Virus record (IMG/VR): IMGVR_UViG_3300047558_000137
Span: 124,001 to 188,000 of that record
Direction: 5' to 3' (one strand)
DNA length: 64,000 bases
Shown: in pieces, positions 35,225-62,475 of the stretch
How the letters are laid out: every line of letters begins with the position of its first letter
Position numbering within the stretch: position 1 is the stretch's first letter
Made by a program: the position numbers and the translations under genes
Notes under the pieces: generated by a model
Seen by the model: only the letters and a program-made list of their open reading frames with translations
Databases searched by the model: none
What the model was told of the DNA's origin: nothing

Positions 35225-35505
35225 GCCCACCTCATCAGGAACACTGCCTTATCACGCTCGTGCTTGAAGAAGATTGTTTCAAATCTCCAAATCCAATCGC
35301 GTCCAAAATGTTCTTCACACCACAGCATGATTTCTTCAAATGGTGCAGCACCATTATACTGCCAGTGAGAGAAATACTGACACACAATATTAACTGCGTT
35401 TGCGTCATTTGTATATAGGCAAGGAGTCTCTGCTACAAACTCCCGTAGACGTTCGCGGAGAGTGCTGTAAATCGAATCAACTTGCAGTGTGTTCTTTACT
35501 TTCAT
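35221..35505 (-). CDS. FxLRW-array protein
   Basis: Ends RDKAVFLMRWA. Confidence 0.75.
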   Translation of the reverse strand: MKVKNTLQVDSIYSTLRERLREFVAETPCLYTNDANAVNIVCQYFSHWQYNGAAPFEEIMLWCEEHFGRDWIWRFETIFFKHERDKAVFLMRWA

Positions 35506-35732
35506 GACCACCTCAACATAAAAAGAGTTGCTTTTTCCTTGCTAGTAAATTGCCACCAGGTCCCGATATAATTGTGACATTCTCTCCAGCCTGCACATTT
35601 CTTTCCGTTGCCAAAAGTGTCCCGGCACCAATCAAACATGTTATCGTATCCGTTTCGATCTGCATGTTCAAAGTCTAAATGTACGTGCCATTGCCATTTT
35701 CTAGCATCTTTTCTACGTTGTTTTGAGTTCAT
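35502..35732 (-). CDS. FxLRW-array protein
   Basis: Ends EKATLFMLRWS. Confidence 0.75.
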   Translation of the reverse strand: MNSKQRRKDARKWQWHVHLDFEHADRNGYDNMFDWCRDTFGNGKKCAGWRECHNYIGTWWQFTSKEKATLFMLRWS

Positions 35733-35914
35733 GCCCACCTCAATAAAAATGCTGTTAAATCTTGTTCAGTCTTATAGACTATACCGGTTGCAAAAGCATC
35801 GTATTCAGGTCTGCTGTTACACCAGTCATAAATTTCATCCCACTCAGCCGCAGAGAAATGAAAACTAATACCAATGTAATTGTAGCGATGATCGATTGTA
35901 AACTTCTGAGTCAT
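35729..35914 (-). CDS. FxLRW-array protein
   Basis: Ends QDLTAFLLRWA. Confidence 0.75.
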   Translation of the reverse strand: MTQKFTIDHRYNYIGISFHFSAAEWDEIYDWCNSRPEYDAFATGIVYKTEQDLTAFLLRWA

Positions 35915-36108
35915 GCCCACACCAATGCAAATAACGTAGCGTCTACTTGACGCACAAACTTAAATGTGTAATCCCAGTCGTCTTTAAAGTAATCTGGCTT
36001 TGTGAAGTTCCAGTCCTTATGCTGAACCAAATTTTGATGCATTAGCCATGATAATATATCAGGAAGAACCTGATCACGTTTAATGCTAACACAAACATCG
36101 TAAGTCAT
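35911..36108 (-). CDS. FxLRW-array protein
   Basis: Ends DATLFALVWA. Confidence 0.75.
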   Translation of the reverse strand: MTYDVCVSIKRDQVLPDILSWLMHQNLVQHKDWNFTKPDYFKDDWDYTFKFVRQVDATLFALVWA

Positions 36109-36314
36109 GCCCACTTTAACCTAAACCACATGGCATCCTGCTCACGCTCAAACCAAACATAGCGACCAGCATAATACAGATAGAACTTACCAGGGCTGTC
36201 ATGCAGTTGCAGTTCACGCTTGAGATTTCGATCAAAACGATCATGCATATCGGAAACACTGACTTTGTGCCAGCGTAGTTGGCGAATCCGTTTATCTTTG
36301 TTCCAGTATTTCAT
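36105..36314 (-). CDS. FxLRW-array protein
   Basis: Ends EQDAMWFRLKWA. Confidence 0.75.
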   Translation of the reverse strand: MKYWNKDKRIRQLRWHKVSVSDMHDRFDRNLKRELQLHDSPGKFYLYYAGRYVWFEREQDAMWFRLKWA

Positions 36315-36631
36315 GACCACCTCAATGATAACCAAGTCAATAGTTCTTCGCTAATGATATAACGGTCCCAGAATCCGGGCCTTGTTGCTTTTAATTCACC
36401 ATGTTTCCACATGTATAGGGCTTGTTGCTCTATCCAGTGACTGACCTCTCTATTGACATCTACGACTACATACCCTTCGGGTACAGTTTCATTATGATTA
36501 GTAACCGTAACCCATTTGGGTGGTGTTAGATCCATAGGCTGTACACCCACAATATCTTGTGCTATTAACTTGGGAAGAATTTTCCTAATCATAGGAATCA
36601 TTATCATTGGATTTTTTAATGGGTCTGTCAT
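36311..36631 (-). CDS. FxLRW-array protein
   Basis: Ends EELLTWLSLRWS. Confidence 0.75.
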   Translation of the reverse strand: MTDPLKNPMIMIPMIRKILPKLIAQDIVGVQPMDLTPPKWVTVTNHNETVPEGYVVVDVNREVSHWIEQQALYMWKHGELKATRPGFWDRYIISEELLTWLSLRWS

Positions 36632-36855
36632 GCCCACCTCAACAAAAATGCAGATGCCTTGGCATCATCATTGAACTTAAAAACCACAGCCCACTGATTG
36701 AACTCAAGATATTGCTCTTTAGTACCGGAACGTCGGTTAAATTTAGCAAAACTCCAATCCCATGTGCGAACATCGTTACCGAAAGTCTCAAAACACCAAG
36801 TCAGCTGTTGTGTCAATCCGACATCAGACTTTGCGTCCACGTTTACTTTAATCAT
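36628..36855 (-). CDS. FxLRW-array protein
   Basis: Ends AKASAFLLRWA. Confidence 0.75.
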   Translation of the reverse strand: MIKVNVDAKSDVGLTQQLTWCFETFGNDVRTWDWSFAKFNRRSGTKEQYLEFNQWAVVFKFNDDAKASAFLLRWA

Positions 36856-37103
36856 TGCCACCTCAACCTACATATTGTAGCATCTTTTTCATGCAAGAAC
36901 CAGACACTTCTCATAAACATTTTGTATGTGTGCGGGTCAAAAGTTTCCCGGCACCACGTGTTAATTGTTTCAAAATCGTGTTGCTTCCAGTTTAGTGCAG
37001 TCTCATACTCTGCACCTAAATGCCATCCAAACTCCGGGGCCTCGCAAGGAGTCATAGGAATCATAACCTTTTTACCGTCAATGTATGTCCACACTTCTGT
37101 CAT
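36852..37103 (-). CDS. FxLRW-array protein
   Basis: Ends EKDATICRLRWQ. Confidence 0.75.
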   Translation of the reverse strand: MTEVWTYIDGKKVMIPMTPCEAPEFGWHLGAEYETALNWKQHDFETINTWCRETFDPHTYKMFMRSVWFLHEKDATICRLRWQ

Positions 37104-37327
37104 AGCTTTAATAAAAACATTAGATAGTGTTGTTCATTGTGAAATGTCAAATAGTTGCGACCTTCTTTCCAGTTGTAGTATTGTCCAACATCGTATTTGT
37201 CATTGAGCCAGCGCCAAAGATTACTGTATCGTATTTGATCCTTAAGCCAGCTATCTTTAATCTGCTCGATATGAGCATCAATTGGAATCTTGTGTTTGAA
37301 CCAATGATTAAACAGATGTACTTTCAT
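37100..37327 (-). CDS. FxLRW-array protein
   Basis: Ends EQHYLMFLLKL. Confidence 0.7.
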   Translation of the reverse strand: MKVHLFNHWFKHKIPIDAHIEQIKDSWLKDQIRYSNLWRWLNDKYDVGQYYNWKEGRNYLTFHNEQHYLMFLLKL

Positions 37328-37569
37328 GACCACCTCAATACAAATGCTGTATGACTAGATTCATTGTCCCAACGTAAATACCATCCTTGTGTTTTTGTTG
37401 CAACAAACCGCCCGCCAACGGGACGAAGCTCATGGTTCATTACTGTACCCGGATCCCACCCATTGGCACGAGCAATAGTCTGACAATGTTTAAAAAAGTT
37501 ATCAAAATACTTGGGCCATGCATCTTCCCAATAACCTTTAGTAACATGTACTATAAACTTGTCAGACAT
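37324..37569 (-). CDS. FxLRW-array protein
   Basis: Ends SHTAFVLRWS. Confidence 0.75.
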   Translation of the reverse strand: MSDKFIVHVTKGYWEDAWPKYFDNFFKHCQTIARANGWDPGTVMNHELRPVGGRFVATKTQGWYLRWDNESSHTAFVLRWS

Positions 37570-37787
37570 TATGCCCACCTCAACATAAACATAACATAAT
37601 CACGTTCATCTTCAAAATAAAACACCGGCGATTCTTGATCTTCTTCTACGGCATGCCACTTAGTTAATGCCTGCGTGATTACATCACCGTTCTGCATATC
37701 GAGTCCTTGTGCTGTATGGTACTCGTAGAAGTTGCGCCACCAGTTGGTCCACACGCCACGCTCATTAATCACATTTACTTCAATCAT
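37569..37787 (-). CDS. FxLRW-array protein
   Basis: Ends RDYVMFMLRWA. Confidence 0.75.
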   Translation of the reverse strand: MIEVNVINERGVWTNWWRNFYEYHTAQGLDMQNGDVITQALTKWHAVEEDQESPVFYFEDERDYVMFMLRWA

Positions 37788-37981
37788 AGCCATTTTAATG
37801 CAAACATTGATGCATCAGCTTCATCTCGGAAATAAAATCCAGTATTCCCAAATGACGATTCCCAGGACCAACGATCTTGATCTTTACGATGCCAGACTGC
37901 GTAACCAAAATGTCGGATACACCAGGCTCGGATGATATCTATTTCGTGATAGCGATCCTTACCTAATACAAACTCAGTCAT
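37784..37981 (-). CDS. FxLRW-array protein
   Basis: Ends ADASMFALKWL. Confidence 0.75.
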   Translation of the reverse strand: MTEFVLGKDRYHEIDIIRAWCIRHFGYAVWHRKDQDRWSWESSFGNTGFYFRDEADASMFALKWL

Positions 37982-38274
37982 TGCCATCTCAGACTAAACA
38001 TCATGGCATCAGCTTCACGACGGAAGATAAAGACCAAATCGCTTTCTTCATCATCGCTAGCATCAACGTGCTGTATAACACCTTCAGCTTCTTGCTCAGT
38101 GGTAAGCTCAGGAACCTGCTCTACACGTTCTTCGTAATAGAACCAGTCCTCGATGCCCATCCAGGTGTTTTTAACAAAGCGGCGCGAACCAAGACCAATA
38201 CTGGCTCGGCACCATTCTTCGATTTCCACGAGCTTGTCGTGGTGCTTACGGTCTAGTTTGATAGTGGTTGTCAT
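37978..38274 (-). CDS. FxLRW-array protein
   Basis: Ends ADAMMFSLRWQ; leaderless promoter upstream. Confidence 0.75.
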   Translation of the reverse strand: MTTTIKLDRKHHDKLVEIEEWCRASIGLGSRRFVKNTWMGIEDWFYYEERVEQVPELTTEQEAEGVIQHVDASDDEESDLVFIFRREADAMMFSLRWQ

Positions 38275-38322
38275 AGCTGTATTATAGCATTTTTTGAATT
38301 TACAAAAAGTAGTACTAAAGTA

Positions 38323-38568
38323 CTAGGAAAACTTTAGCTTCCAGAGCAGGTATAACTCTGGCGTTAGATACAAGGCTACATTGCTTTCGGGCTCAGAGTC
38401 CATTGGCTTCCAGTACTCAGCATCTTGGCTGCGTATCCATTCAAACATGCCTGCGGGAGTTACAATGGATTCAAACTCTGGATCGTCGTAACAACTTGTT
38501 TTACCTTTGTAGCTAAACAGTTCATACTGTCCATTACGTGGCAAAAATTGTTTGTAAGTTACAGCCAT
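38323..38568 (-). CDS. FxLRW-array protein
   Basis: Ends PELYLLWKLKFS (TAG stop). Confidence 0.7.
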   Translation of the reverse strand: MAVTYKQFLPRNGQYELFSYKGKTSCYDDPEFESIVTPAGMFEWIRSQDAEYWKPMDSEPESNVALYLTPELYLLWKLKFS

Positions 38569-38747
38569 TTCAAATTGAACCATTCAATATGTGATTGTAC
38601 CATAAAACTATATCCTTCAGGTCCCGAAGATACATGCATATGGGCAACATCATTTTCTAACAGCCAGAGGACCATTTCAAGCCACTCTGGCGTTGTGCCT
38701 ATAGTATAGCAGTTTGGACCGTATCCGTATTTTTTAGTTAGTTTCAC
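38559..38747 (-). CDS. FxLRW-array protein
   Basis: Ends IEWFNLKWL. Confidence 0.7.
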   Translation of the reverse strand: MKLTKKYGYGPNCYTIGTTPEWLEMVLWLLENDVAHMHVSSGPEGYSFMVQSHIEWFNLKWL

Positions 38748-38934
38748 GACTGCCCCATTTTAACTTATACCAGGTATAAACATCTTCATCCATGTAGAGA
38801 TTCTCAAGACCATAGTCATACTCTGTGCCCCAACGACTGCTGTTCTCTGGACCAAAGTTTAAACCTAGCCAATGCCTAACATCCTGCTTTAGTTTCCAGT
38901 CCCAGTGTTCGATAACTATGCCATGTTGCTTCAT
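38734..38934 (-). CDS. FxLRW-array protein
   Basis: Ends YTWYKLKWGSRETN. Confidence 0.7.
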   Translation of the reverse strand: MKQHGIVIEHWDWKLKQDVRHWLGLNFGPENSSRWGTEYDYGLENLYMDEDVYTWYKLKWGSRETN

Positions 38935-39191
38935 AACCATTTCAACTTTATCAAGGTCAACAAATCTTCACGCACAATGTAGATAGCACGATGACGGCCA
39001 CCATAGCTACGCCACGTTGTTGTGTCTTGTTCTTCAATCCAATCACCAAACCAGTAGCTACATTGTATACGATACCATACATATCCATCAGGTTCTTTAT
39101 AGCCGTACTCGCAACCAGGCTCAACTTGATAGAGTCTGCTACTGTATCCTTCTGGTGGGTGTTTGGTATGAAACCACTCCTCGTAACTCAT
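38931..39191 (-). CDS. FxLRW-array protein
   Basis: Ends EDLLTLIKLKWL. Confidence 0.7.
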   Translation of the reverse strand: MSYEEWFHTKHPPEGYSSRLYQVEPGCEYGYKEPDGYVWYRIQCSYWFGDWIEEQDTTTWRSYGGRHRAIYIVREDLLTLIKLKWL

Positions 39192-39403
39192 GCAAATCTC
39201 AACAAAAAATAAGTTAAATCTTCTTGGCTTTTCAACTCGACGTAATTCTTGGTAGAATCACTAACAAACACACCTTGGCGCCAACGACGATTATCCCTGT
39301 CTTCTTGGATCCAATTTACAATGCTCCAATGTATGGGCGTGTCGAATGGAATTTGATAAGCAAACCCATCATATAGCTGTTTGTTGAGATTGAAATACCT
39401 CAT
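39188..39403 (-). CDS. FxLRW-array protein
   Basis: Ends EDLTYFLLRFA. Confidence 0.75.
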   Translation of the reverse strand: MRYFNLNKQLYDGFAYQIPFDTPIHWSIVNWIQEDRDNRRWRQGVFVSDSTKNYVELKSQEDLTYFLLRFA

Positions 39404-39612
39404 GACCACCTCAAAGCAAATAACACAGCATCCTGCTCAGATCTAAAATGCCACACAGTTTGGTCCCGGCGAAACATAGCACCCCTATAATCGTCCTGAC
39501 AATTTTGTTCGCACCATACAAACCTTTGATCCTTGCCCCAGACCCAACCACCCGAATGTGGAACTTCCACTCGATGACGGAGATCTCGATTGCGACTGTA
39601 TTTTGATTTCAT
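39400..39612 (-). CDS. FxLRW-array protein
   Basis: Ends QDAVLFALRWS. Confidence 0.75.
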   Translation of the reverse strand: MKSKYSRNRDLRHRVEVPHSGGWVWGKDQRFVWCEQNCQDDYRGAMFRRDQTVWHFRSEQDAVLFALRWS

Positions 39613-39869
39613 GACCACCTCAGCGCAAACATCATAGCATCTTGATCACATTCAAACTCAATGAACTTTTCTTTGAGATATCCGGGACTGTGATAGTAAG
39701 GATGTTGGCAGTTGTCTTCGAGCCATTGATTAACTAGATAATCTTTGTAGCTAATCTGCCATTGCTTTGGTACACCGTCAAAAGTATGGCCATAGACAAC
39801 ACGGTGCAACTTGGGCACCTTGAGAGTTTTTCCAATACCAAACTTTGTGTCTATGTAAGTTATTGCCAT
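39609..39869 (-). CDS. FxLRW-array protein
   Basis: Ends QDAMMFALRWS. Confidence 0.75.
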   Translation of the reverse strand: MAITYIDTKFGIGKTLKVPKLHRVVYGHTFDGVPKQWQISYKDYLVNQWLEDNCQHPYYHSPGYLKEKFIEFECDQDAMMFALRWS

Positions 39870-40132
39870 CTTAGTACAAACAGTGTTAAATCCGCTTCGT
39901 TACGAAACCAAAACTTGGCGCTGTTGGCATACCAACGAGCTGATGGAGTCCATACACCGTCTTCTGGAGTAGGACCAAATGTATCGAAACACCATTTTAG
40001 CATATCATTCCAATATTGATTATACCATCCGTGCCCTGAACCAAATTCAAATACTGGTGCAACAGTGTAATAACGTGCTCCATAAACGCGGCCTTCATTT
40101 ACAGTAAGCGTCACGCCTCCATTATGTGCCAT
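39860..40132 (-). CDS. FxLRW-array protein
   Basis: Ends ADLTLFVLRWQ. Confidence 0.75.
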   Translation of the reverse strand: MAHNGGVTLTVNEGRVYGARYYTVAPVFEFGSGHGWYNQYWNDMLKWCFDTFGPTPEDGVWTPSARWYANSAKFWFRNEADLTLFVLRWQ

Positions 40133-40461
40133 ACATTGATCTTTTCTTCTAGATCACGATTTTTCTTTGCAATCAAGTCACGTTCTTCACGTGCAACTTT
40201 TGCAATGCGTTCTGCGCTTTCAGTTCGACGCACTAGTTCAGCAGCCATATCTTCAATGGTACGTGCTTCTAGCATTTTAATTTCGTAACGTGCTTCTTTA
40301 AGCTGTCGTTCGGCATAGTCAACATCATTCTTTAGATGATCTATTTCATCTTCAAGATCAATAACTTTATTGTCATTGAGAATTATTTCGCACAGACGGC
40401 GAACAACAGGATCGTCTGTATAACGAAGATGGTAGTCGGCAAATTCTTTATCGGTTCTCAC
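40111..40461 (-). CDS. Coiled-coil hypothetical protein (non-family insert in array)
   Basis: GTG start after GGAG; heptad-rich. Confidence 0.6.
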   Translation of the reverse strand: MRTDKEFADYHLRYTDDPVVRRLCEIILNDNKVIDLEDEIDHLKNDVDYAERQLKEARYEIKMLEARTIEDMAAELVRRTESAERIAKVAREERDLIAKKNRDLEEKINVWHIMEA

Positions 40462-40724
40462 GAGTGTGCTCCAAACTTTAATGCAAACATTATAGCAGCT
40501 TCTTCCCATTCAAATTGAAAGGTAGCATAATCAGTGCCCCAAATATTTTGATTGTCGTTTCCGTTACGCCAATCAATATAGTAGCGTTTAAAATAAGGTT
40601 TGTCGCCAGTAGCATATTCATTGCACCATTCCATCATGGCAGTAATATCTGCTTTACGACTTACACGCACCTTATATATAAAGTCTGGGTTACTGCGACC
40701 GCCCTCGCTGTAAAATAATTCCAT
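40458..40724 (-). CDS. FxLRW-array protein
   Basis: Ends EAAIMFALKFGAHS. Confidence 0.7.
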   Translation of the reverse strand: MELFYSEGGRSNPDFIYKVRVSRKADITAMMEWCNEYATGDKPYFKRYYIDWRNGNDNQNIWGTDYATFQFEWEEAAIMFALKFGAHS

Positions 40725-40728
40725 AATA

Positions 40729-41109
40729 CTATTTCTCTGTTAAGGCACGAATTGTTTCGTATCGTTTAATTGCTTCTTCGACATCTTTCCATGCATCTTT
40801 TACAGCAGGATGAACGTCATTGTAACTATGATCTTGCGGATTATAACCGGGTCGAATTTTTATACTAGGTGGATCTTGCTTAACCCAGCCCTGAGGATCT
40901 GCGTCAGTCCAATAATAAACAATAGCAGAATTGCCCAAGGTAGAGCTTGAGTAGTCACGCCACTCATCTTTACGCTTGTCGTACCATAGATAACCATGGT
41001 CGCTGTCGCCGTCGCCTTTACCGCCCATGCCCCAACCGCGGTAGCAGAGATAGTAGTCGCTCTTACTAGGCTGACGTTCTTCTACTCTATACCAAATGCT
41101 TGTTCTCAT
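40729..41109 (-). CDS. Hypothetical protein (non-family insert)
   Basis: WYRVEERQPSKS.YYL; TAG stop. Confidence 0.6.
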   Translation of the reverse strand: MRTSIWYRVEERQPSKSDYYLCYRGWGMGGKGDGDSDHGYLWYDKRKDEWRDYSSSTLGNSAIVYYWTDADPQGWVKQDPPSIKIRPGYNPQDHSYNDVHPAVKDAWKDVEEAIKRYETIRALTEK

Positions 41110-41342
41110 GTTGCATATTTTAACACAAATATCAAATATTTTTGCTCGTCAACAACTTCAAGTGTATCACGCAGGTTAAAATCATCCTCGGCCACAGTTA
41201 ATTTAATACCATAGTTTACATTTAGCCAGCGTACAAAATCCTGTGTGCTGGGCTCATAATATCCAGTAAAAGTGGTGTCATACTCTTTTTTGGCTGCACG
41301 TAAGAGCATGAATAACTCTTGCCAGGTTGGAGTGTTAGTCAT
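41106..41342 (-). CDS. FxLRW-array protein
   Basis: Ends EQKYLIFVLKYAT. Confidence 0.7.
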   Translation of the reverse strand: MTNTPTWQELFMLLRAAKKEYDTTFTGYYEPSTQDFVRWLNVNYGIKLTVAEDDFNLRDTLEVVDEQKYLIFVLKYAT

Positions 41343-41556
41343 CTTTTAGTATATCAAATAATTCAGCGTATTCAACTTCGGGCTCCATGTGAAACCCGTT
41401 CCCCCATACCGCCCAAAAACGTTGTTTATATACAGTCTTTAACCAAACATATCTCCCGCCAATTGTTTTAACTGGCCAAATGGCAAAGGTCCGGCGCCAT
41501 GGATAGCAGTCGGCGCCATTGTATATGCGTTGGGTTATCAACATGTTATTCTTCAT
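41335..41556 (-). CDS. Hypothetical protein (non-family insert)
   Basis: WRRTFAIWPVKTIGGRYVWLK. Confidence 0.6.
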   Translation of the reverse strand: MKNNMLITQRIYNGADCYPWRRTFAIWPVKTIGGRYVWLKTVYKQRFWAVWGNGFHMEPEVEYAELFDILKDD

Positions 41557-41782
41557 TTTTCTGGATACAATTTAGAAACAAAAATGTAGTAAACGATTCA
41601 GTGTAAAGATCTCTGCGGATATAGATAGTATGACCTTGAGTAAACCAAGGGCGTTCGATGAACTTTTGGTAAGGATCATTATCGCCGTAGGCCTTACGCA
41701 GGCTGTCAATTACAGGCACCCAGTCTTGAGCTTTAAATTTTAAGTTAAAGTGTGTTTTTTTATAATGATTAAAATAACTCAT
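41546..41782 (-). CDS. Hypothetical protein, degenerate array member
   Basis: ESFTTFLFLN near C-terminus. Confidence 0.55.
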   Translation of the reverse strand: MSYFNHYKKTHFNLKFKAQDWVPVIDSLRKAYGDNDPYQKFIERPWFTQGHTIYIRRDLYTESFTTFLFLNCIQKNEE

Positions 41783-41988
41783 GACCACCTCAGTGCAAAC
41801 ATTGCGGCATCTTGTTCTAGTGCAAAGTAGTATACACGATTATCAGTAAACGGATGGTCTACCCCATCAAACTCATAGTTATAATCCGATACATTGTCCA
41901 ACAACCAAATACGCAGGTCCCTAAAGTGTCCAGTACTACGCCATGGCACACTGACTGGAATTGTACACCAATATTTTACAGGTCTCAT
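41779..41988 (-). CDS. FxLRW-array protein
   Basis: Ends QDAAMFALRWS. Confidence 0.75.
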   Translation of the reverse strand: MRPVKYWCTIPVSVPWRSTGHFRDLRIWLLDNVSDYNYEFDGVDHPFTDNRVYYFALEQDAAMFALRWS

Positions 41989-42212
41989 GCCCACCTCAAC
42001 ACAAACTCTGTAGCATCTTTTTCATTGTAAAAAAAGTAGTCGTGCCCGCCGGGTACACTAAAGATTGCATACAGGTTACGAATATGTTCAGTTTCGAAAA
42101 ATTCAAAATAACTGTGGTCATTTCGAAGGTCCAACACTTTCGAATGATCAAAGTGTATGCAGGTCCATCCTGCATTTTTAAAATCTTGATGACTTTGTGA
42201 GATCTGTGTCAT
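41985..42212 (-). CDS. FxLRW-array protein
   Basis: Ends KDATEFVLRWA. Confidence 0.75.
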   Translation of the reverse strand: MTQISQSHQDFKNAGWTCIHFDHSKVLDLRNDHSYFEFFETEHIRNLYAIFSVPGGHDYFFYNEKDATEFVLRWA

Positions 42213-42439
42213 GCCCACCTCAACACAAACATCATGTGATCGTCTGCACGCCTAAACTCAAACACCCCTTCGCCAACAAAGCGCCAGTTGCCATCTTTGA
42301 TTTGTTCAGCACACCATGTAATACAAGGAGTCCAACCTTGATAGTATGTGTTAACAATACCGCTGCCAATTGAATTAGGACCAGGTGCCGGCACACTTGC
42401 TACAATCCAACCATTGAGTTCATTTCGTGGAAGTTTCAT
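42209..42439 (-). CDS. FxLRW-array protein
   Basis: Ends DDHMMFVLRWA. Confidence 0.75.
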   Translation of the reverse strand: MKLPRNELNGWIVASVPAPGPNSIGSGIVNTYYQGWTPCITWCAEQIKDGNWRFVGEGVFEFRRADDHMMFVLRWA

Positions 42440-42657
42440 AACCATCTCAAACTAAACAAGGTTGCATCTTCGCCACGCTTGAATGCAAAGTAAGGGCCAA
42501 CGTTGCGCCACTCACTGCTCTTAAAGTTTTCGTAACACCAGCGTTCTTTGGCACCAGTATCATCTTTGACTTCTACATGGTACGGCCAATATTTCTTGTT
42601 TAAAACTCTCATAAGGTGCATCTCATTTCGTTTCTGTGTGTAGTAACTTAACTCCAT
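42436..42657 (-). CDS. FxLRW-array protein
   Basis: Ends EDATLFSLRWL. Confidence 0.75.
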   Translation of the reverse strand: MELSYYTQKRNEMHLMRVLNKKYWPYHVEVKDDTGAKERWCYENFKSSEWRNVGPYFAFKRGEDATLFSLRWL

Positions 42658-42878
42658 TTTAACACAAATTCCATTAAAGTTATATCATCGGCAAATAATA
42701 CAGTCATACCTTCTGATATTACTGTGTCTCTAGCATCGCACCAATCAGCAAATGCGTCGATATTATCTGCCCAAAATTTATAATCTGTCAGAATGACTAG
42801 TCGCTCGTCTGTATCCAATAATTCACTTGGAGCAATAATAAAACGGTGATGCCGCCACTCTTCAAATATATCTGTCAT
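42648..42878 (-). CDS. FxLRW-array protein
   Basis: Ends TLMEFVLKWS. Confidence 0.75.
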   Translation of the reverse strand: MTDIFEEWRHHRFIIAPSELLDTDERLVILTDYKFWADNIDAFADWCDARDTVISEGMTVLFADDITLMEFVLKWS

Positions 42879-43114
42879 AGATATTTGATCCTAAAGAATG
42901 TTTCTGCAGCCTCATCGTAGAAGTCTAAGCAGATCATTTCTCTATGTTGATGGCGGCCATCTGTATCGGTGACCCAGTCTTGGTGGTAGCGTGTAGTGAA
43001 TCCAAGTTCGCGCCGCATAACTTCGCGAATCATAAAGACGCTGGGCTTGGTCTTATATTCTTCTTTAATTCGTTTGCGTATGCGTGTCCATTCACGCTCA
43101 TTTAAGGATATCAT
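42875..43114 (-). CDS. FxLRW-array protein
   Basis: Ends AAETFFRIKYL. Confidence 0.7.
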   Translation of the reverse strand: MISLNEREWTRIRKRIKEEYKTKPSVFMIREVMRRELGFTTRYHQDWVTDTDGRHQHREMICLDFYDEAAETFFRIKYL

Positions 43115-43349
43115 ACTTTAACTTAAACCAAGTTGCATCAGATTCAGTTAGTGTTGCTACAATTTTGTACCTATAACTGTAGGTTGTATTATCTAAGTGC
43201 AGGGCCCAGTAAGGTTCTTCAACGGCATTTTCCATTACCCACTTACCAGCGTCAGTCTGTTGCCATTCCCAAATTGGTTGGGCAGCATATATTTCTGGGT
43301 CGTCTACATCGCCCATGCTGAAGGTGTGAACTATTAATTTTACCGCCAT
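43098..43349 (-). CDS. FxLRW-array protein
   Basis: Ends DATWFKLKYDILK. Confidence 0.7.
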   Translation of the reverse strand: MAVKLIVHTFSMGDVDDPEIYAAQPIWEWQQTDAGKWVMENAVEEPYWALHLDNTTYSYRYKIVATLTESDATWFKLKYDILK

Positions 43350-43522
43350 CGTAATGCAAATTCTGTGGCAGCTTTTTGGTCTGTAAAAGTAAACCTATAC
43401 TGCTCATTAAAAAGTGTTGTTTCAAAGTCCAGGGACCATGCAGATTCATCCAAATTCTTATTGCACCAGGTGGCCGCGAGCGTAGCTCTATTTGCACCAG
43501 ATACTGTAATAGTACTAATCAT
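43340..43522 (-). CDS. FxLRW-array protein (first in array)
   Basis: Ends KAATEFALRWR; TATAAT 8 nt upstream. Confidence 0.75.
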   Translation of the reverse strand: MISTITVSGANRATLAATWCNKNLDESAWSLDFETTLFNEQYRFTFTDQKAATEFALRWR

Positions 43523-46899: not shown

Positions 46900-48702
46900 T
46901 TAAACTCGTGTAATTTTATTTTTCGTTGAATACAACTTACGGAATATAAACTTTTTAAAGTCTTTAATATTTGGTGTGCTCGGCTCAATTTGGTACTGGA
47001 ACGCACCCCGATCCCACGTTTCTATATCAACATCAGTATCAACTGTTAAAGGATAAGATACAGAATCCCGATACATTGAATTAGTCTGTAGCTGATAGAT
47101 AGAATCGGGTATATTGGTTAAACTTCTGGCAACACTGGTTGTTAGGTCAAATGTAAGATCCAAATGATCGTAGAGATATTCGGAATTTAAGTTATGATAA
47201 AGCCCATGCCCATTTTTTCGAAATGATTCAAGATCCTTTATTTCCCCAGTTGATAGATATTGGTGTATAATATTTCTAGACTTGACAAACTGTTCGGCAA
47301 AGTCTCCTATGCGGAATTGTTCGAACAGTTGATCGTAGAATTGTCTATAGGATATACCTAATACGTTTCTGCAATACTTGGCATACAGATGACTATAGCC
47401 ATGTATGTGAAAATTAATAACAGTGGCCGCATATAGATAACCATCAACAATGTCATCTAGGCTCATAGTGTCGGTTGACTGTACCAATTCCATATCTTCA
47501 TCGATACCACGCCAGTCATCTTGGTGATATAGTGTAACAAAATCTCTTACTGTTACAGATTTAATACCATACTGCTGTCTGCTGGCAGGTTGAGATAATT
47601 CACTGTTTTCCAATAGTTGAGCAAAAAATACTTCAATGGTTTGATGCTGTCCCATTTCTAGCGTATCAGCTATGCCCTGCTTCCAGGACTCTAGTGTTTC
47701 ATTGGGCAGACCAATAATTAATTCTGTATAGGTTGGTATCTTGTGCTGTTGGCTCAACTTCATTAACTTCTGTACATCATTAATGGCAAGATTTTTACGT
47801 TTGATTGCATCTAAGGTATTGTCGTTGTTACTTTGTAATGCCACAGTAACACCTTTGCTATAAGGACCTATTACTCGCGCAATTTCAAATGCATTTTCTG
47901 AACTGTTCTTAGGATACTGAATATTGACAGAACTGATCATACTGTTATCTGCGGCCTCACGTATCATGTGTGCTATTTCAAGATCTCTTTTGAACAATAT
48001 ACCAAAGTTGGCATCTGCTACAAATATATGCACAACAGGATTTGCTCGAGCCCAGTCTAGTTCTGCTTGTATATGCTCTAACTGAAACTTTTTTATTTTT
48101 GAGTATGTAACTCCGCCCCAATCGCAAAACGTGCATGAATAAGGGCATCCACGATTGGTTTCTAATGTCATTGCCCAGACAAAGTTGGGATTGTCTTTGA
48201 CGATTTGATCAAACACTCCTGAGGTATATGCACTTGGAATGTCTAGGTCTTGTAGTCGTTGTCGTTGATAAAACGGTTCTATAGGTCGATTGGCAGCAAT
48301 GTCTCGAAGTATGGCAGTGAAGTTTTCCTCACCTTCGCCCATGATAATGCAGTCAATGAATTTATGCTGTATTAATTTACCGCTGGGTTCTGCTCCACCA
48401 AATACAATAACACAATCAGGCCAACGTTGTTTAATTTCTTGGGCCAATGTTAGACAATAATTTTTATTCCATATATAACAGCTAAACCCGCATAAGACAG
48501 GATCCGACATTCGTGCCAATACATCTTCAACAGGTTCTCTGCGGAATATAATATCAGCTAAATGGAATTGTTCACGTATGTCAGAAAAATGGGTTGCATA
48601 ACTCCATATGCAACCCACACTGTACGGTAGCCAATAAGTATTTTCGTCTCTATATTCAACACCGTACTGTGGTTGAAATAGATATACGTTTGATTTTGTC
48701 AT
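46900..48702 (-). CDS. B12-binding domain radical SAM protein
   Basis: LCGFSCYIWN, VFGG.EP, IMGEGE, ETNRGCPYSCTFCDWG (CxxxCxxC), ELIIGLPNET. Confidence 0.9.
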   Translation of the reverse strand: MTKSNVYLFQPQYGVEYRDENTYWLPYSVGCIWSYATHFSDIREQFHLADIIFRREPVEDVLARMSDPVLCGFSCYIWNKNYCLTLAQEIKQRWPDCVIVFGGAEPSGKLIQHKFIDCIIMGEGEENFTAILRDIAANRPIEPFYQRQRLQDLDIPSAYTSGVFDQIVKDNPNFVWAMTLETNRGCPYSCTFCDWGGVTYSKIKKFQLEHIQAELDWARANPVVHIFVADANFGILFKRDLEIAHMIREAADNSMISSVNIQYPKNSSENAFEIARVIGPYSKGVTVALQSNNDNTLDAIKRKNLAINDVQKLMKLSQQHKIPTYTELIIGLPNETLESWKQGIADTLEMGQHQTIEVFFAQLLENSELSQPASRQQYGIKSVTVRDFVTLYHQDDWRGIDEDMELVQSTDTMSLDDIVDGYLYAATVINFHIHGYSHLYAKYCRNVLGISYRQFYDQLFEQFRIGDFAEQFVKSRNIIHQYLSTGEIKDLESFRKNGHGLYHNLNSEYLYDHLDLTFDLTTSVARSLTNIPDSIYQLQTNSMYRDSVSYPLTVDTDVDIETWDRGAFQYQIEPSTPNIKDFKKFIFRKLYSTKNKITRV

Positions 48703-48714
48703 CAACCGTATTTA

Positions 48715-49233
48715 TTAGTTACTTACTACCCTTGCTACAGAATTAATAACACTGGCAATACGTCCGATATCGCGAAGTTGTTCTACGGTGTAGCCCATCT
48801 TCTTTAATCCTTCATAGTGTGCCTTAACACAAAAGTGGCACTTACCAACAATACTTGCAGCCAAACTATAGGCTTCAAAACGTTCTTTGGTTGTACCGCC
48901 ACTGGTACTGATAGCGTTCATACGCAACTGTGCCGGCAATCCTTTTAACTGCTCATCGTCGGCCATTTCAACATAAGGATACCATATGTTGTTTTGTGCC
49001 ATTAATGCGCCAGCCGTAAGTGCTGCCTGTGTTTCAGTTTTGTTGGCAATTTGGCTTTCCATCCAAGTCCATAGCTTGCTGTTACCTGTTGCAAAAGCTG
49101 CCGCTAAGGCCACAGCTTCTGCTTCTTCTACTGGTAGTGTGCTACGCTTGATTACTGCGTCAATGTTTAATTTTGTATCTTTTGCATAGTCAGGAATACT
49201 GGCTTCCTTTAATGCATCTACCCATGCTGTCAT
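48715..49233 (-). CDS. ahpD: Alkylhydroperoxidase AhpD
   Basis: IPDYAKDTKLN, MAQNNIWY, LAASIVGKCHFCVKAH. Confidence 0.9.
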   Translation of the reverse strand: MTAWVDALKEASIPDYAKDTKLNIDAVIKRSTLPVEEAEAVALAAAFATGNSKLWTWMESQIANKTETQAALTAGALMAQNNIWYPYVEMADDEQLKGLPAQLRMNAISTSGGTTKERFEAYSLAASIVGKCHFCVKAHYEGLKKMGYTVEQLRDIGRIASVINSVARVVSN

Positions 49234-49243: not shown

Positions 49244-49471
49244 TTACGTTAATGCTTTAAAAGAGCCTACTAGATAGATTACAACCACAACTAGTTCTAC
49301 TATGATTAGGCTCCATTTCTTCCATATAAATCCTAACCAGAGCCATAATAGATTGGCAGCTAGACAGACAAATATATTAATAGGATAATAGTTAAAACTT
49401 GTTAACCAAACACCCAACAACAGTATTAGTGTAGCTGACCATTCTACTATAAACTCTAGGTTAAATTTCAT
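49244..49471 (-). CDS. Small membrane protein (3 TM)
   Basis: Hydrophobic; EWSAT...YP.N...W..WG. Confidence 0.55.
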   Translation of the reverse strand: MKFNLEFIVEWSATLILLLGVWLTSFNYYPINIFVCLAANLLWLWLGFIWKKWSLIIVELVVVVIYLVGSFKALT

Positions 49472-50016
49472 TAAAGTGTTTCACCACCGATTGGGCGTGA
49501 GCATGGGCACAACTCGCCAGTTTGCAATGCATCTAATACACGCAATGCTTCGTCTGGGTTACGGCCAACATCCAAGTTGTTTACTGTAACGTGTTGGATG
49601 ATGTTGTCTGGGTCAACAATAAATGTTGCACGTAGTGCGGCACCTGCTGGACCATAGAAGATACCCAATTGCTCGGCCAAGCTGTTTTCGTCGCGAGCTA
49701 CGTCAGCAAATGACCAGCTGTTAGTTTTCTTCAAGTCTTCGTGTGCGTTACGCCAAGCCAACTTGCAGAACTCATTGTCTGTTGAGCCGATTAGCAATAC
49801 TGCATCACGGTCAGCAAAGTCCGAATTCAACTTGTCGTAGGCTACGATTTCAGTTGGACATACAAAAGTAAAGTCCTTTGGATAATAAACGATTACTTTC
49901 CATTTACCTTCAAAGCTCTTGTCTGTGATGGTTTCAAATGCGCCGTCTGGTGTCAATGCGCCTGGCTTAACGCCTGTTACTGCAAAACTTGTGATTTTGT
50001 CGCCGATAGTTTTCAT
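49471..50016 (-). CDS. ahpC: Peroxiredoxin AhpC
   Basis: YYPKDFTFVCPTE, ALRATFIVDP, VGRN, TGELCP. Confidence 0.95.
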   Translation of the reverse strand: MKTIGDKITSFAVTGVKPGALTPDGAFETITDKSFEGKWKVIVYYPKDFTFVCPTEIVAYDKLNSDFADRDAVLLIGSTDNEFCKLAWRNAHEDLKKTNSWSFADVARDENSLAEQLGIFYGPAGAALRATFIVDPDNIIQHVTVNNLDVGRNPDEALRVLDALQTGELCPCSRPIGGETL

Positions 50017-50041: not shown

Positions 50042-50386
50042 TTATTTTTGTGATCTGCAATTTGGGCAAATCAATTCTAAGTTAGATTCGTCATTATTGT
50101 AACTGTTGTTGTCTTTGTATTCTACTACCAAAGGTGCAGGTTCTCCTTGCCATTCTGTAATACCGCAACGTTCGCATTTGTGACCACGTTCTTGGATCAA
50201 ATATTTTTTAACCCAATCTGGCACTTGCCTCCAAGCTGATGGCTCTTTGGCCATTTTCCAATCGTTAACCAATTGGCGGCTGCGGTGTTGTTGTTGACAA
50301 CTATTGTTGCAGTATTTGTTAGTATAACTATTACCTTTGATAGGATTGTTACGACCACAATTCAAACAAGTAAAACAACGTGACAT
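50042..50386 (-). CDS. HNH-like zinc-binding protein, catalytic His residues apparently lost
   Basis: KCERCG...LVVEYKDNN..NN..SNLELICPNCR. Confidence 0.65.
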   Translation of the reverse strand: MSRCFTCLNCGRNNPIKGNSYTNKYCNNSCQQQHRSRQLVNDWKMAKEPSAWRQVPDWVKKYLIQERGHKCERCGITEWQGEPAPLVVEYKDNNSYNNDESNLELICPNCRSQK

Positions 50387-50497
50387 ATCTTCTTTCTCTA
50401 GAGCTAATCTAAAAGCACTATGTAATTACTTAGTGCTCTATACTTGGTAATTATATACGCATATAACTATAAATCAAGTCATTTGGTTAAATACGTT

Positions 50498-51136
50498 GTG
50501 TTCAAGCCAACCATTGCACTTTATCAACACCATCCCGAAGCTTCCCGAGATTGCGGGCAGGGAATAATTTTGTCAATGGCTGATAGATATAACATTGTAG
50601 AGTTCGCTGAGCAGGACTGCACAGATGAATTTCTAAGCAAAGTGGACCTGCTAGCATTTCCCGGGGGAATAGGAGATGCAGACAAATACTACGAATTCTT
50701 CCGACGCAAAACGGCCAATAGAGTGGCCGATTTTATTGACCGTGGTGGCCGCTATCTAGGTATCTGTATGGGCGCATACTGGGCTGGCCTTAACTATTTT
50801 GATATCCTAGATGGAGCAGACGCAGTACAGTATATCAAACAACCCACTGCTGACATACGCCGTAGCTACGGAACTGTGGCTCCTGTTACTTGGAATAATA
50901 CAGGCTATAATATGTATTTCTACGATGGCTGTACGTTTACGGGCAACAACTTTGAAACCGTGGCACGTTACGCAAACGGTGACCCAATGGCTATAAGAAA
51001 AGGCAGTATAGGGTTAATTGGCTGTCATCCCGAAAGCCAAGAATATTGGTACGATAAACCCTACTTAAAGGGCCATTGGCACAATGGGCAACACAATCGG
51101 CTGTTGCTTAATTTTGTTGATCAGCTGATGCTCTGA
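50498..51136 (+). CDS. Class I glutamine amidotransferase-like protein (biotin-protein ligase N-terminal type)
   Basis: FPGG, YLGICMGAY nucleophile elbow, GCHPE; GTG start just after TTAAATA. Confidence 0.75.
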   Translation: MFKPTIALYQHHPEASRDCGQGIILSMADRYNIVEFAEQDCTDEFLSKVDLLAFPGGIGDADKYYEFFRRKTANRVADFIDRGGRYLGICMGAYWAGLNYFDILDGADAVQYIKQPTADIRRSYGTVAPVTWNNTGYNMYFYDGCTFTGNNFETVARYANGDPMAIRKGSIGLIGCHPESQEYWYDKPYLKGHWHNGQHNRLLLNFVDQLML

Positions 51137-51510: not shown

Positions 51511-52077
51511 TTAATCATCGATGTCCTCATAATATTCTTCGTCCTCATAAATGTAGTCTTTGTTATCATAGTCCTGATAATAGGCTTCATTTGGTGCAAG
51601 GATTCGGAATTGTCCTGCGTACTTTAATGCAGCCATAGTAAGATCGTATTCTTCTCGGATATCGCAGATAGCCCATCTGCTACCACACGACCCGATAACT
51701 TCTTTCAGCTTACTGTGTTTAAATTCATTATCTTTAAGGGCTCGGTGAATACCAGACCCTTGACTTAAAATAATACGCCCAGCTCGCTGTTCGGGATGTT
51801 TGAGCCATGCATCCATAATACCCAACGAACTAATCGTGGCATTATTGTCTGGATCAATGGTTAACTTACACTTCTTGAATTTGATACTACCCTTGGTCTT
51901 TTCATTACCAGGAGTTTCCTTGGTGCTCCAAGGCATATCTGAGGTTACGTGATTGACGTAGAACGTGACGCCATGTGCTTTTACAACCCACATTGGTATG
52001 GTTGGATCTGCCAAGTGTCCTTTGTTAAAGTGAAACACTAGGTCTTTACATTTGTATTCAATCTATTTTTGTGACAT
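51511..52077 (-). CDS. Hypothetical protein with in-frame amber codon at position 5 (readthrough candidate)
   Basis: AAGGAG-N6-ATG TCA CAA AAA TAG ATT GAA TAC AAA TGT AAA GAC CTA GTG, in frame with ORF-track 51511-52038. Confidence 0.7.
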
Positions 52078-52113
52078 GCTGTTCTCCTTGGTTATGTCAA
52101 TAATATTTATAAA

Positions 52114-52189
52114 TGGTGCGCTAGACGGGACTCGAACCCGTACATGGGAGTTTTAGAGGCTCCTGCTCTAACCTTTTAGCTACTAGCGC
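52114..52189 (-). tRNA. Amber suppressor tRNA (anticodon CUA)
   Basis: 76 nt cloverleaf: acceptor GCGCTAG/CTAGCGC, A73, encoded CCA; anticodon arm GGAGC-CT CTA AA-ACTCC; T-arm ACGGG-TTCGAGT-CCCGT. Confidence 0.88.
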
Positions 52190-62142: not shown

Positions 62143-62475
62143 TAGTGGTAGCTTATTCTGTTACGAGGAAAGCTACCGAAACCCTAGGCGGCGTTTAGGC
62201 TACCAATGCGAACTGTGAGTCGTTTGCGTTTACTTTTTTGCTTCTACGGCCGGGAAACCCCAACCCTAAGGGCTTTCACATTGCCCTGCTGTCCACTCTG
62301 TTACTCTTGACCCAATCGATCCTGTGTCAGGCCCATTATAAAACACACTAAGCACGACTACATTGCCAAAAAGACCTGGAAGTCAAAAACAATGTACATA
62401 ATGTGTTTTATGGTGGACCTGGGCGGCACTGCCCCGCCGTCTTGAATCCTTTTCTCTTTGCTTCATACAGCAATA
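62143..62475 (-). ncRNA. ssrA: Circularly permuted (two-piece) tmRNA
   Basis: Acceptor piece ending CAGGTCCACCA at 62411 precedes coding piece starting GGGCCTG at 62334 (G3:U70, A73); tag ANDSQFALVA* at 62227-62195; outer limits approximate. Confidence 0.88.

Follow-up and report, generated by a model that had tools for sequence, protein, structure and literature searches.

An amber codon at the start of one phage gene and an adjacent tRNA(CUA), conserved together in a standard-code giant phage and dozens of related phages

The window, the whole stretch of 64,000 nucleotides analysed here (positions 124,001 to 188,000 of IMG/VR record IMGVR_UViG_3300047558_000137), carries on its minus strand a tRNA gene with anticodon CUA at 52189-52114, 36 nt upstream of a gene that is interrupted by TAG at its fifth codon. 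The tRNA is a canonical cloverleaf with G1-C72, C2-G71, G3-C70, the discriminator A73 and an encoded CCA. ARAGORN gives the anticodon as cta and labels the tRNA 'Pyl' only because of that anticodon, and the Rfam tRNA model (RF00005) scores 60.3 bits against a gathering score of 29. Upstream of the tRNA lies a promoter-like sequence (52225-52198), composed of TTGCAG (52225-52220), a 16-nt spacer and TATAAT (52203-52198), the latter ending 8 nt before tRNA position 1; it was not listed by a consensus scan because the -35 element matches only 3 of 6 positions, and its function is inferred only. Downstream of the tRNA, a Shine-Dalgarno site AAGGAG (52089-52084) lies 6 nt before an ATG (52077-52075), which is followed by TCA CAA AAA (leader M-S-Q-K, 52077-52066), the in-frame TAG (52065-52063) and then ATT GAA TAC AAA TGT AAA GAC CTA GTG, in frame with a 183-codon ORF that ends at TAA (51513-51511). 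The GTG at 52038, where a mechanical ORF call of 175 aa begins, has no Shine-Dalgarno site. A terminator-like hairpin (51502-51486) lies just after the gene, while no terminator-like site was found between the tRNA and the gene; in the window the two appear to form one transcription unit. The motif TATAAATA at 52111-52104 was considered as a T4-type late promoter and rejected, since it is not enriched (3 copies in the window against 6 expected). The observation made in an earlier note on this sequence, that a tRNA(CUA) directly precedes a gene interrupted by TAG at codon 5, is thus confirmed, and every sequence statement in that note holds, including that TAG is a rare true stop in the window (6 of 140 genes called by our own caller).

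Comparison with related viral contigs shows that the arrangement is far beyond chance and that the gene is neither an error nor a pseudogene. In 79 of 80 related contigs (50-100% aa identity), which fall into 57 clusters at 90% nt identity and 34 at 80%, the same gene has an in-frame TAG 1-8 codons after an ATG with a Shine-Dalgarno site; the equivalent of the Shine-Dalgarno motif (translated as K-E-N/I-K) precedes the leader ATG in the related loci, and the leader in relatives is 2-9 codons long and variable in sequence. In 75 loci the TAG lies exactly at the position found in the window and is followed by ATT (63), ATC (11) or ATA (1), and in four loci it lies 1-4 codons further upstream. 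An A follows the TAG in all of these and in the cultured Rhizobium phage RHph_I1_18, whereas the distant TAG-bearing locus L170 has a G (L numbers denote individual related loci). In E. coli, a 3' purine favours amber suppression (Bossi; Miller and Albertini). The stop is always TAG, although TAG ends only 5.8% of 1870 called genes in the same loci, and the terminator of the gene itself is TAA (50) or TGA (29) and never TAG in 79 loci. TAG-less relatives have their start Met at exactly the position of the TAG; no family-wide tree was built to map gains and losses of the TAG and of the tRNA.

The codons that follow the TAG behave as coding sequence. The eight codons between the TAG and the proposed GTG start keep their amino acids while third positions vary (Y is TAT 40 / TAC 27, C is TGT 63 / TGC 11, K is AAG 35 / AAA 27, and D is GAT 38 / GAC 30), and the Val codon itself is GTC, GTT or GTA in 28 of 75 loci, indicating that translation passes through the TAG. 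In RHph_I1_18, no ATG, GTG or TTG lies in the 22 codons after the TAG. Homologues that start at the GTG had been named beforehand as an outcome that would overturn the suppression reading, and these data show that they do not start there. A sequencing error had likewise been raised as an alternative, and it is excluded by the presence of the TAG in about 80 separately assembled contigs.

A same-strand tRNA(CUA) was found in 74 of the 80 loci. Four of the other six have under 1 kb of upstream sequence, and two TAG-bearing loci with about 3.7 kb of upstream flank (L106 and L155) show no tRNA; on the point that relatives with the TAG but without a suppressor would count against the idea, no TAG-bearing locus with 4 kb or more of upstream flank lacks a tRNA(CUA). 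The tRNA is upstream of the gene in most loci and downstream in 5 of them and in RHph_I1_18, where it lies 11 nt after the gene; in many relatives it lies 0.3-3.7 kb away. It is also present in L170. At least nine of these tRNAs were missed by ARAGORN. Across 54 distinct members of the tRNA family, 12 of 15 base pairs show compensatory changes, CUA is nearly invariant, and U33, A37, A73 and CCA are invariant within that alignment, although tRNA(CUA) genes with G73 exist outside it (L181/L182 and phage XacN1). The tRNA therefore looks functional and maintained by selection, but neither its aminoacylation nor suppression in vivo was assayed. The note had suggested that the anticodon arm resembles tRNA-Trp, which is not supported: by BLAST, the canonical tRNAs most like this suppressor family, tested with the RHph_I1_18 member, are mostly annotated tRNA-Lys, which is only a lead to the inserted residue. 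Comparison with co-resident phage tRNAs did not settle which tRNA the suppressor derives from, and the isotype was not classified with tRNAscan-SE. The 'Q' at the TAG position in database homologues is not evidence for Gln, because it comes from code-15 gene calling: the DNA of locus L002 reads MSQQ-TAG-IEY where the database protein P0005 reads MSQQQIEY, and the homologue P0123 does not translate in code 11.

A scan for further in-frame TAGs, which the note had also proposed, indicates that these genomes otherwise read as standard code. A first BLAST screen that read TAG through in all six frames was dominated by off-frame and antisense ORFs of conserved genes and was replaced with codon-usage scans. 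No other credible in-frame TAG was found in the window (including a tail-fibre-like 737-aa gene, a clamp loader and a ligase), in 471 kb plus 1.25 Mb of related loci, or in the complete 170,978-bp genome of RHph_I1_18, in which the homologue, present as the same module but unannotated in GenBank, is the single N-terminal-TAG candidate and the capsid, portal, tail and baseplate genes are annotated intact. About 310 kb of the window's own 374-kb genome was not seen and could hold other TAG clients; the full 374,314-bp contig and the other 330-365-kb contigs were not scanned for further in-frame TAGs or for aaRS, RF or PTH genes. The only internal candidate in the window, the TAG at 32159 that joins a 159-aa and a 141-aa gene in frame, is an ordinary stop: the upstream protein matches PHROG profiles to their end, and of the four relatives, one keeps the in-frame TAG junction as the window does, one ends in TAG out of frame with the next gene, and two end in TAA or TGA. 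TAG ends about 4-8% of genes in the window, the related loci and RHph_I1_18, and code-11 gene calls cover 93% of the window and 89% of RHph_I1_18, so that neither the many TAG-bearing genes nor the low code-11 coding density of a code 15 phage is seen.

The function of the protein was not identified, so that no purpose for the proposed gate can be shown. Searches of Pfam, PHROGs and NCBIfam and a PDB profile search all gave nothing. The N-terminal domain (52062-51826, residues 1-79 after the TAG), which is predicted to be all-beta, is the conserved core of the family (FHFNK...PMW...YVNH...WSTKETP...TKGS); its AlphaFold2 model has a pLDDT of 97.2 and no PDB neighbour (best E 0.54), and its matches in BFVD are only uncharacterised phage proteins. 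In this model the first strand spans residues 2-12, upstream of the GTG. The C-terminal domain (51825-51511), predicted to be alpha/beta, carries an acidic tail; in the full-length model (pLDDT 73) residues 91-170 have a pLDDT of 81-95 and the tail is below 50, and PDB searches returned only weak RRM/ACT/WYL-like hits (RRM/ACT-like, E at least 0.045). Proteins that fuse the N-domain to other sequence carry no informative Pfam domain. A resemblance of the second amber-gated ORF (L107) to PTH2 peptidyl-tRNA hydrolase was considered but was not supported by Pfam or PDB. The protein has four conserved cysteines, and the most conserved neighbours of the gene are an AhpC-like peroxiredoxin and an AhpD-like protein.

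Based on the results presented above, we consider it probable that the tRNA(CUA) and the gene beside it form a two-part module. In this view, the real start is the ATG at 52077, and four codons later the ribosome meets UAG; if the host release factor reads that codon, only a tetrapeptide is made, whereas if the charged phage tRNA(CUA) reads it, translation continues into the 183-residue, two-domain protein. Synthesis of the protein would then be conditional on the suppressor tRNA and scaled to it, as in an AND or feed-forward gate. Because the TAG sits where TAG-less relatives have their start Met, outside the folded domain, the identity of the inserted residue probably does not matter, and what is selected would be the stop codon itself. 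Sequence comparison establishes the conservation of the TAG, the protein-coding selection on the codons just after it, the company of a structurally constrained tRNA(CUA) wherever this could be tested, and the standard code of the surrounding genomes; that suppression actually occurs, that the gate serves timing or dosage, and that the inserted residue is Lys (most likely) or Gln are inferences, since expression, proteomic or reporter evidence is lacking. As to a true feed-forward gate, dependence of the ORF on the tRNA is supported by conservation and co-occurrence, but joint transcription is suggested only by the missing terminator-like site, and with the tRNA so distant in many relatives this point is left undecided. 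Related CUA tRNAs occur in phages in which tblastn found no homologue of this gene and no gated ORF lies next to the tRNA (XacN1, Xoo-sp13 and the Eneladusvirus group), so the tRNA probably has other roles; inspection beside the suppressor tRNAs of XacN1, Xoo-sp13, phiN3 (whose anticodon is UUA) and Yersinia phage fHe-Yen9-03 likewise showed no such gate. In addition, two TAG-less family members (L180 and L181/L182) still sit next to a tRNA(CUA), a linkage that is not explained by decoding alone. On the whole, the core interpretation in the note, that a cis-linked suppressor tRNA reads the TAG of one gene in a genome that is not recoded as a whole, is supported, while the purposes it listed (timing, host dependence, addiction or a step toward code 15) were not tested.

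Among the alternatives, an autoregulatory sensor is possible but rather unlikely. The protein itself might act on suppression or termination, for instance on the suppressor tRNA or on release factor 1, so that the early UAG makes its synthesis report the suppression level, closing a feedback loop in the way the early in-frame UGA of prfB senses RF2. In favour of this, gene and tRNA stay adjacent even in L180 and L181/L182, gene order is flexible while linkage is tight, the N-domain gene lies near a peptidyl-tRNA hydrolase and near the RNA ligase RnlA in Phosso and Atu_ph07, and the family has no other detectable role. On the other hand, nothing ties the protein to translation, its most conserved neighbours are not translation genes, and three TAG-less lineages show no tRNA nearby. 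The further reading that the protein is a functional partner or regulator of the suppressor tRNA or of UAG termination, and that the leader UAG makes its synthesis a read-out of suppression, is not excluded, although we consider it unlikely; it would make this a phage-borne feedback circuit setting how strongly UAG is read through in the infected cell, and the phage tmRNA found near the suppressor tRNA in several lineages might deal with the read-through products.

A neutral relic or first step toward code 15, in which the TAG arose as a harmless mutation because a suppressor tRNA happened to be present and has no regulatory meaning, is improbable. A published model has suppressor-tRNA acquisition precede the spread of in-frame stops (Borges et al. 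preprint, 10.1101/2021.08.26.457843), and TAG is a rare terminator here; however, a neutral TAG should interchange with sense codons and appear in other genes, whereas it is fixed at one position in 79 of 80 diverged loci, essentially no other gene carries one, and the position coincides with the ancestral start codon. Still less likely is a leader mini-ORF that truly terminates, with re-initiation at the adjacent codon. That codon is ATT, ATC or ATA in 79 loci, and AUU can serve as a weak start, as in infC of E. coli, but this explains neither the constant use of TAG nor the company of the tRNA(CUA); RHph_I1_18 has AAC and L170 has GTT after the TAG, and in TAG-less relatives the equivalent residue is V, L or I in the first beta strand, so the Ile is explained by the fold. 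A start at the internal GTG or at Met24, where the mechanical ORF list and many database gene calls begin (V/MFHFNK or MW...), or a pseudogene or sequencing error, is already contradicted by the comparative data.

We found no published description of this arrangement, but several known systems are comparable. In code 15 (TAG to Gln) phages such as crAss-like and Lak phages, a phage tRNA(CUA) also reads in-frame TAG in a standard-code host, and recoding is proposed to regulate expression (10.1101/2021.08.26.457843); there, however, tens to hundreds of in-frame TAGs are spread through late genes, code-11 coding density is low and TAG interchanges with CAG/CAA, whereas here one gene has one strictly conserved TAG at codons 2-9. 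Orphan CUA suppressor tRNAs occur in the standard-code jumbo phages XacN1 (PMC5852040) and RsoM2USA (PMC8504454). The XacN1 tRNA-Sup genes are the closest GenBank phage tRNAs to that of the window by BLAST, genome size is similar (about 340-385 kb) and a phage tmRNA lies nearby, but XacN1 lacks this gene family, and its authors read through only C-terminal TAGs. In prfB, a stop a few codons into the ORF likewise makes output depend on the balance between termination and an alternative decoding event, but by a +1 frameshift at UGA with an internal Shine-Dalgarno site, and its product is the factor that reads the stop; here the early in-frame stop is present and would be read in frame by a cognate tRNA, while nothing shows that the product acts on decoding. 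An engineered feed-forward 'leak dampener' (PMC7969014) has the same logic as the gate proposed here, with an amber codon in the target and a co-expressed suppressor tRNA, whereas this arrangement is natural, conserved and phage-borne. In pyrrolysine and selenocysteine insertion, a dedicated tRNA reads a stop codon in a small set of genes of a standard-code genome. tRNAPyl has a 6-bp anticodon stem, a 3-nt variable loop, a small D loop and no GG or T-psi-C motifs; the tRNA here has a 5-bp anticodon stem, a 5-nt variable loop, GG in the D loop and GGTTCGA in the T arm. No PylS/PylBCD or SelB-type machinery was seen among the roughly 35 window proteins scanned, which is not an exhaustive scan, and the position outside the folded domain implies no special residue. 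Read-through of the Q-beta A1 type, in which a near-cognate host tRNA reads a leaky stop at the end of a complete protein and gives two products sharing an N-terminus, does not apply, since termination here gives only a short peptide and a cognate tRNA is encoded in cis.

The arrangement has practical consequences, since gene callers truncate this gene, start it at Val9 or Met24, or translate it with code 15. The tRNA and leader could also serve as a compact natural part for amber-dependent expression control, and because the module exists in a cultured phage-host pair, RHph_I1_18 on Rhizobium phaseoli, the question of what an orphan phage suppressor tRNA does is directly open to experiment. 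Suppressor tRNAs are repeatedly annotated in standard-code phages without any known target, and the XacN1 authors stated explicitly that they could not find one. The present finding supplies at least some of these tRNAs with a first conserved, testable target and, if the inferred suppression occurs, shows a natural use of an amber codon as a gene-specific switch rather than as a genome-wide code change.

On the minus strand, a tRNA occupies positions 52189-52114. The detection of this tRNA by ARAGORN, which had been named beforehand as a check, returned anticodon cta at position 34, and the tRNA model of Rfam scored 60.3 bits. The tRNA adopts an ordinary cloverleaf with the pairs G1-C72, C2-G71 and G3-C70, the discriminator A73 and an encoded CCA. 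The label 'tRNA-Pyl' assigned by ARAGORN only reflects the anticodon, since the 5-bp anticodon stem, the 5-nt variable loop, the GG in the D loop and the GGTTCGA T arm are not those of tRNAPyl. A TATAAT hexamer ends 8 nt before the tRNA and is preceded by TTGCAG at a 16-nt spacing, an arrangement that is promoter-like, although nothing more is shown. An AAGGAG (52089-52084) lies 24 nt after the CCA, and six nt further on is an ATG (52077), followed by TCA CAA AAA TAG (52065-52063) and then by ATT GAA TAC AAA TGT AAA GAC CTA GTG, in frame for 183 codons to a TAA at 51513-51511. A terminator-like hairpin follows at 51502-51486, and no such site was found between the tRNA and the gene. The mechanical ORF list, on the other hand, starts this gene at the GTG at 52038. 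The window itself derives from a 374,314-bp viral contig, IMGVR_UViG_3300047558_000137.

The 183-residue piece after the TAG has 934 relatives in the protein collection, many of them on contigs of 330-365 kb, whereas searches of Pfam, PHROG and NCBIfam assigned it to no family. To examine homologues around the amber codon, as the earlier note had proposed, the 80 best of 225 matching viral contigs were retrieved and the DNA upstream of the match was read. In 79 of the 80, an in-frame TAG lies 1-8 codons after an ATG preceded by a Shine-Dalgarno site; in 75 it lies directly before the conserved I-E-Y-x-C-K-D, and in four more it is 1-4 codons further upstream but still followed by an Ile codon. 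These loci span 50-100% amino-acid identity and form 57 clusters at 90% nucleotide identity and 34 at 80%. The TAG is therefore conserved and not accidental. The 'Q' that some database proteins show at this position results from code-15 gene calling of the same TAG and says nothing about the residue inserted.

Homologues starting at the internal GTG would have counted against the proposed read-through, but the comparison showed the opposite. Across the 75 loci, the eight codons after the TAG keep their amino acids while third positions vary freely (Tyr: TAT 40, TAC 27; Cys: TGT 63, TGC 11; Lys: AAG 35, AAA 27; Asp: GAT 38, GAC 30), and the Val codon that is GTG in the window is GTC, GTT or GTA in 28 loci. 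In addition, a deep-alignment AlphaFold2 model of residues 1-79 reaches a pLDDT of 97.2 and places residues 2-12 in the first beta strand. By this comparison, translation must pass through the TAG, although the suppression itself is inferred and was not shown directly. More distant family members that lack the TAG begin M-[V/L/I]-E-[I/L]-A-C-K, with the start Met exactly where the others have TAG. Consequently, the TAG clade looks like the same protein given a short in-frame leader that ends in an amber codon.

The occurrence of the TAG in relatives without a suppressor had likewise been named in advance as evidence that would contradict the reading. With 10-kb flanks, ARAGORN found a same-strand tRNA(CUA) in 66 of the 80 loci, and the Rfam model recovered eight more that ARAGORN missed (loci L096, L098, L102, L104, L113, L114, L125 and L127), all eight of which carry a YUCUAAA anticodon loop. 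Of the six loci left, four have under 1 kb of upstream sequence and two (L106 and L155) have about 3.7 kb. Gene order and spacing vary: the tRNA ends 26-54 nt before the TAG in 12 loci, lies 83-3729 nt upstream in most loci, lies 47-74 nt downstream of the gene in five loci, and lies 8 kb downstream in one locus. Among 54 distinct tRNA sequences, 12 of 15 predicted pairs show compensatory changes, CUA is nearly invariant, and U33, A37, A73 and CCA are invariant. A distant TAG-bearing relative, L170 (ATG TCA TAG GTT), also has a divergent tRNA(CUA), which ends 24 nt before its ATG. Among the TAG-less relatives, three lineages (L165, L167 and L184) show no tRNA in the available flanks, whereas two (L180; L181/L182) do have a tRNA(CUA) next to the gene. 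Thus, the TAG was never found without the tRNA where this could be tested, while the tRNA does occur without the TAG, and the gene-tRNA linkage appears older than the TAG.

The failure of ARAGORN to detect some of these tRNAs has implications for surveys. Of the eight listed above and the tRNA of L170, all missed by ARAGORN, several have GGGTTTGA T arms or short D arms, and that of L170 has an aberrant T loop, yet the Rfam tRNA model finds them at 33-50 bits. Surveys that rely on one tRNA finder will undercount phage suppressors. In L125 (9479-9559, minus strand) and L127 (2714-2794, minus strand), the Rfam 'freshwater-2' RNA motif (RF02980, 70-78 bits) lies about 65 nt upstream of the suppressor tRNA, on the opposite strand. 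Another tRNA-like gene, with a 6-nt anticodon loop containing GCA and a U discriminator (Cys-like; 'tRNA-???' in ARAGORN), lies directly beside the module in two different lineages, at 10833-10908 (minus strand) in Rhizobium phage RHph_I1_18 and at 10599-10675 in L181. Furthermore, a phage-encoded permuted (two-piece) tmRNA lies within 1-10 kb of the suppressor tRNA in the window (62195-62472, minus strand) and in four unrelated relatives, namely RHph_I1_18 (MN988519, 15429-15752), XacN1 (5066-5486), L104 (169-495) and L181 (7585-7951). Amber read-through sends ribosomes to mRNA 3' ends, which is the substrate of tmRNA, so the pairing may be functional.

A search for other in-frame TAGs, also named beforehand as a check, gave no indication of genome-wide recoding. 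A codon-usage scan trained on the long ORFs of the window found no TAG with coding sequence on both sides except the junction at 32159, which is an ordinary stop. A scan for a Shine-Dalgarno site, an ATG, up to 10 codons, a TAG and then a coding ORF found the target gene and one trivial case with a start two codons after the TAG. Over 1.25 Mb of related loci, 72 of 76 such candidates are the target gene. Code-11 gene calls cover 93% of the window, TAG ends 6 of 140 genes, and a tail-fibre-like gene, a clamp loader and a DNA ligase are intact; about 310 kb of the window's own genome lay outside these scans. In three related loci (L012 about 1391, L020 about 1107 and L045 about 1436, plus strand), a TAG upstream of the tRNA is flanked on both sides by sequence that scores as coding (GAAV-TAG-PVPAV and similar), which may represent a second kind of in-frame TAG or simply in-frame gene junctions.

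A tblastn search of GenBank phages found the N-terminal domain in RHph_I1_18, Sinorhizobium phage Phosso and Agrobacterium phage Atu_ph07. In RHph_I1_18, a cultured phage, the region is unannotated, and the DNA reads ATG AGT GAG TTC ATG TAG AAC GAA TCG TGC, giving M-S-E-F-M-amber-N-E-S-C-R-E-V-I-F-H-F-N-K, a 76-codon version comprising the N-domain only, while a tRNA annotated 'tRNA-Pyl(cta)' starts 11 nt after its stop codon. The whole 170,978-bp genome was examined and is that of a T4-like phage whose capsid, portal, tail, baseplate and replication genes are annotated intact in code 11. Our scan called 251 genes (TGA 125, TAA 106, TAG 20) and found exactly one N-terminal-TAG gene, this one, and no credible internal TAG. 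In Phosso and Atu_ph07, on the other hand, the domain is the C-terminal part of a 173-176-aa protein with no in-frame TAG.

The protein has no known function. The family has 164 clusters at 50% identity among 1.84 billion representatives and occurs in three architectures: two-domain, N-domain alone, and N-domain at the C-terminus of a larger protein. The N-domain is a confidently modelled all-beta fold with no PDB neighbour (best E 0.54), and its matches among predicted viral structures are uncharacterised phage proteins. The C-terminal domain is alpha/beta, with only weak RRM/ACT-like similarity, and four cysteines are conserved. In 27 of 79 related loci the next gene downstream is an AhpC/TSA peroxiredoxin, and in 25 an AhpD-like CMD protein follows. 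In the window, these two genes (49471-50016 and 48715-49233, respectively, minus strand) are displaced by an insertion, being separated from the gated gene by an HNH gene (50042-50386), a BPL_N/GATase-like gene on the other strand (50444-51136) and two small ORFs. The window also encodes a 601-aa B12-binding radical SAM protein (46900-48705, minus strand), which has no homologue in the flanks of the related loci. In addition, a run of small ORFs under 110 aa occupies about 35200-43400 (minus strand); several are preceded by nearly the same upstream sequence, which translates as (I/V)EVVMK and covers the Shine-Dalgarno site plus the start, and this looks like a tandem family of small paralogous genes.

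By BLAST, the canonical phage tRNAs closest to the RHph_I1_18 suppressor are mostly annotated tRNA-Lys, with fewer Asn and Arg. The loop CU-CUA-AA differs from a tRNA-Lys(CUU) loop by one base, and A73 with U35 are LysRS identity elements in E. coli, both points being established knowledge that was not tested in this analysis. Gln is what code-15 phages insert. Therefore Lys or Gln are the candidates, although the inserted residue itself was not identified in this analysis; because the position lies outside the fold, the residue probably does not matter. XacN1 carries two tandem tRNA-Sup genes (3912-3987 and 3995-4070) that share an identical body but differ in acceptor stem and discriminator (A73 against G73), and they may be charged with different amino acids. 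The tRNA(CUA) of L181 also has G73.

Based on the results presented above, the observation in the earlier note of an amber-suppressor tRNA directly upstream of a gene interrupted by an early TAG is confirmed, and its core interpretation, a local read-through of that gene in a genome that is not recoded as a whole, is supported. In the most likely mechanism, the UAG sits so early that termination yields only a di- to nonapeptide, which gives a clean OFF state, while read-through by the charged phage tRNA gives the full protein. The A after the TAG is the context reported to favour amber suppression in E. coli (Bossi; Miller and Albertini). In this view, output depends on the phage tRNA and scales with it, which is the logic of the engineered suppressor-tRNA feed-forward gate (PMC7969014). 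Whereas the conservation of the TAG and of its tRNA is a finding of the sequence comparison, this mechanism is inferred; timing, dosage control or insulation from expression outside a full infection are plausible purposes, but none is shown. The persistence of gene-tRNA adjacency in TAG-less relatives keeps open a further, tentative option, that the protein may act on the tRNA or on UAG termination, with the UAG providing prfB-like feedback. A plain upstream mini-ORF, for which any stop codon would serve, is excluded, because the leader's stop is always TAG although TAG ends only 5.8% of 1870 genes called in the same loci, and the gene's own terminator is TAA (50) or TGA (29) and never TAG.

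In L107, the one locus where the main gene has no in-frame TAG and has lost the gate, a different 122-codon gene (9330-9707, plus strand) lying between the tRNA and the main gene begins ATG TTG TAG ATT after a strong Shine-Dalgarno site. A match to phrog_1866 covers the residues upstream of its first ATG, and the string ATGTTGTAGATTAA occurs twice, at 9234 and 9330. This suggests that the leader cassette can be redeployed.

The related literature describes genome-wide recoding, orphan CUA suppressors in standard-code jumbo phages, and synthetic amber gates. For the orphan suppressors, the authors of the XacN1 study stated that they could not identify target genes, and a similar mention exists for RsoM2USA. 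Phage suppressor tRNAs and programmed recoding are thus already known, whereas no description of a conserved single-gene N-terminal amber gate with a cis-encoded tRNA was found in the open-access papers and preprints searched. The tRNA-Sup genes of XacN1 are the closest GenBank phage relatives of the window's tRNA, but no gated ORF follows them. Similarly, in Sinorhizobium phage phiN3, the tRNA annotated 'tRNA-TERM' (2995-3072) appears from its loop to have anticodon UUA, which would make it an ochre-type suppressor, and no gated ORF follows it. The module, whose mechanism is testable, therefore explains only part of the orphan-suppressor puzzle, yet it is widespread in uncultured jumbo phages and present in at least one cultured phage.
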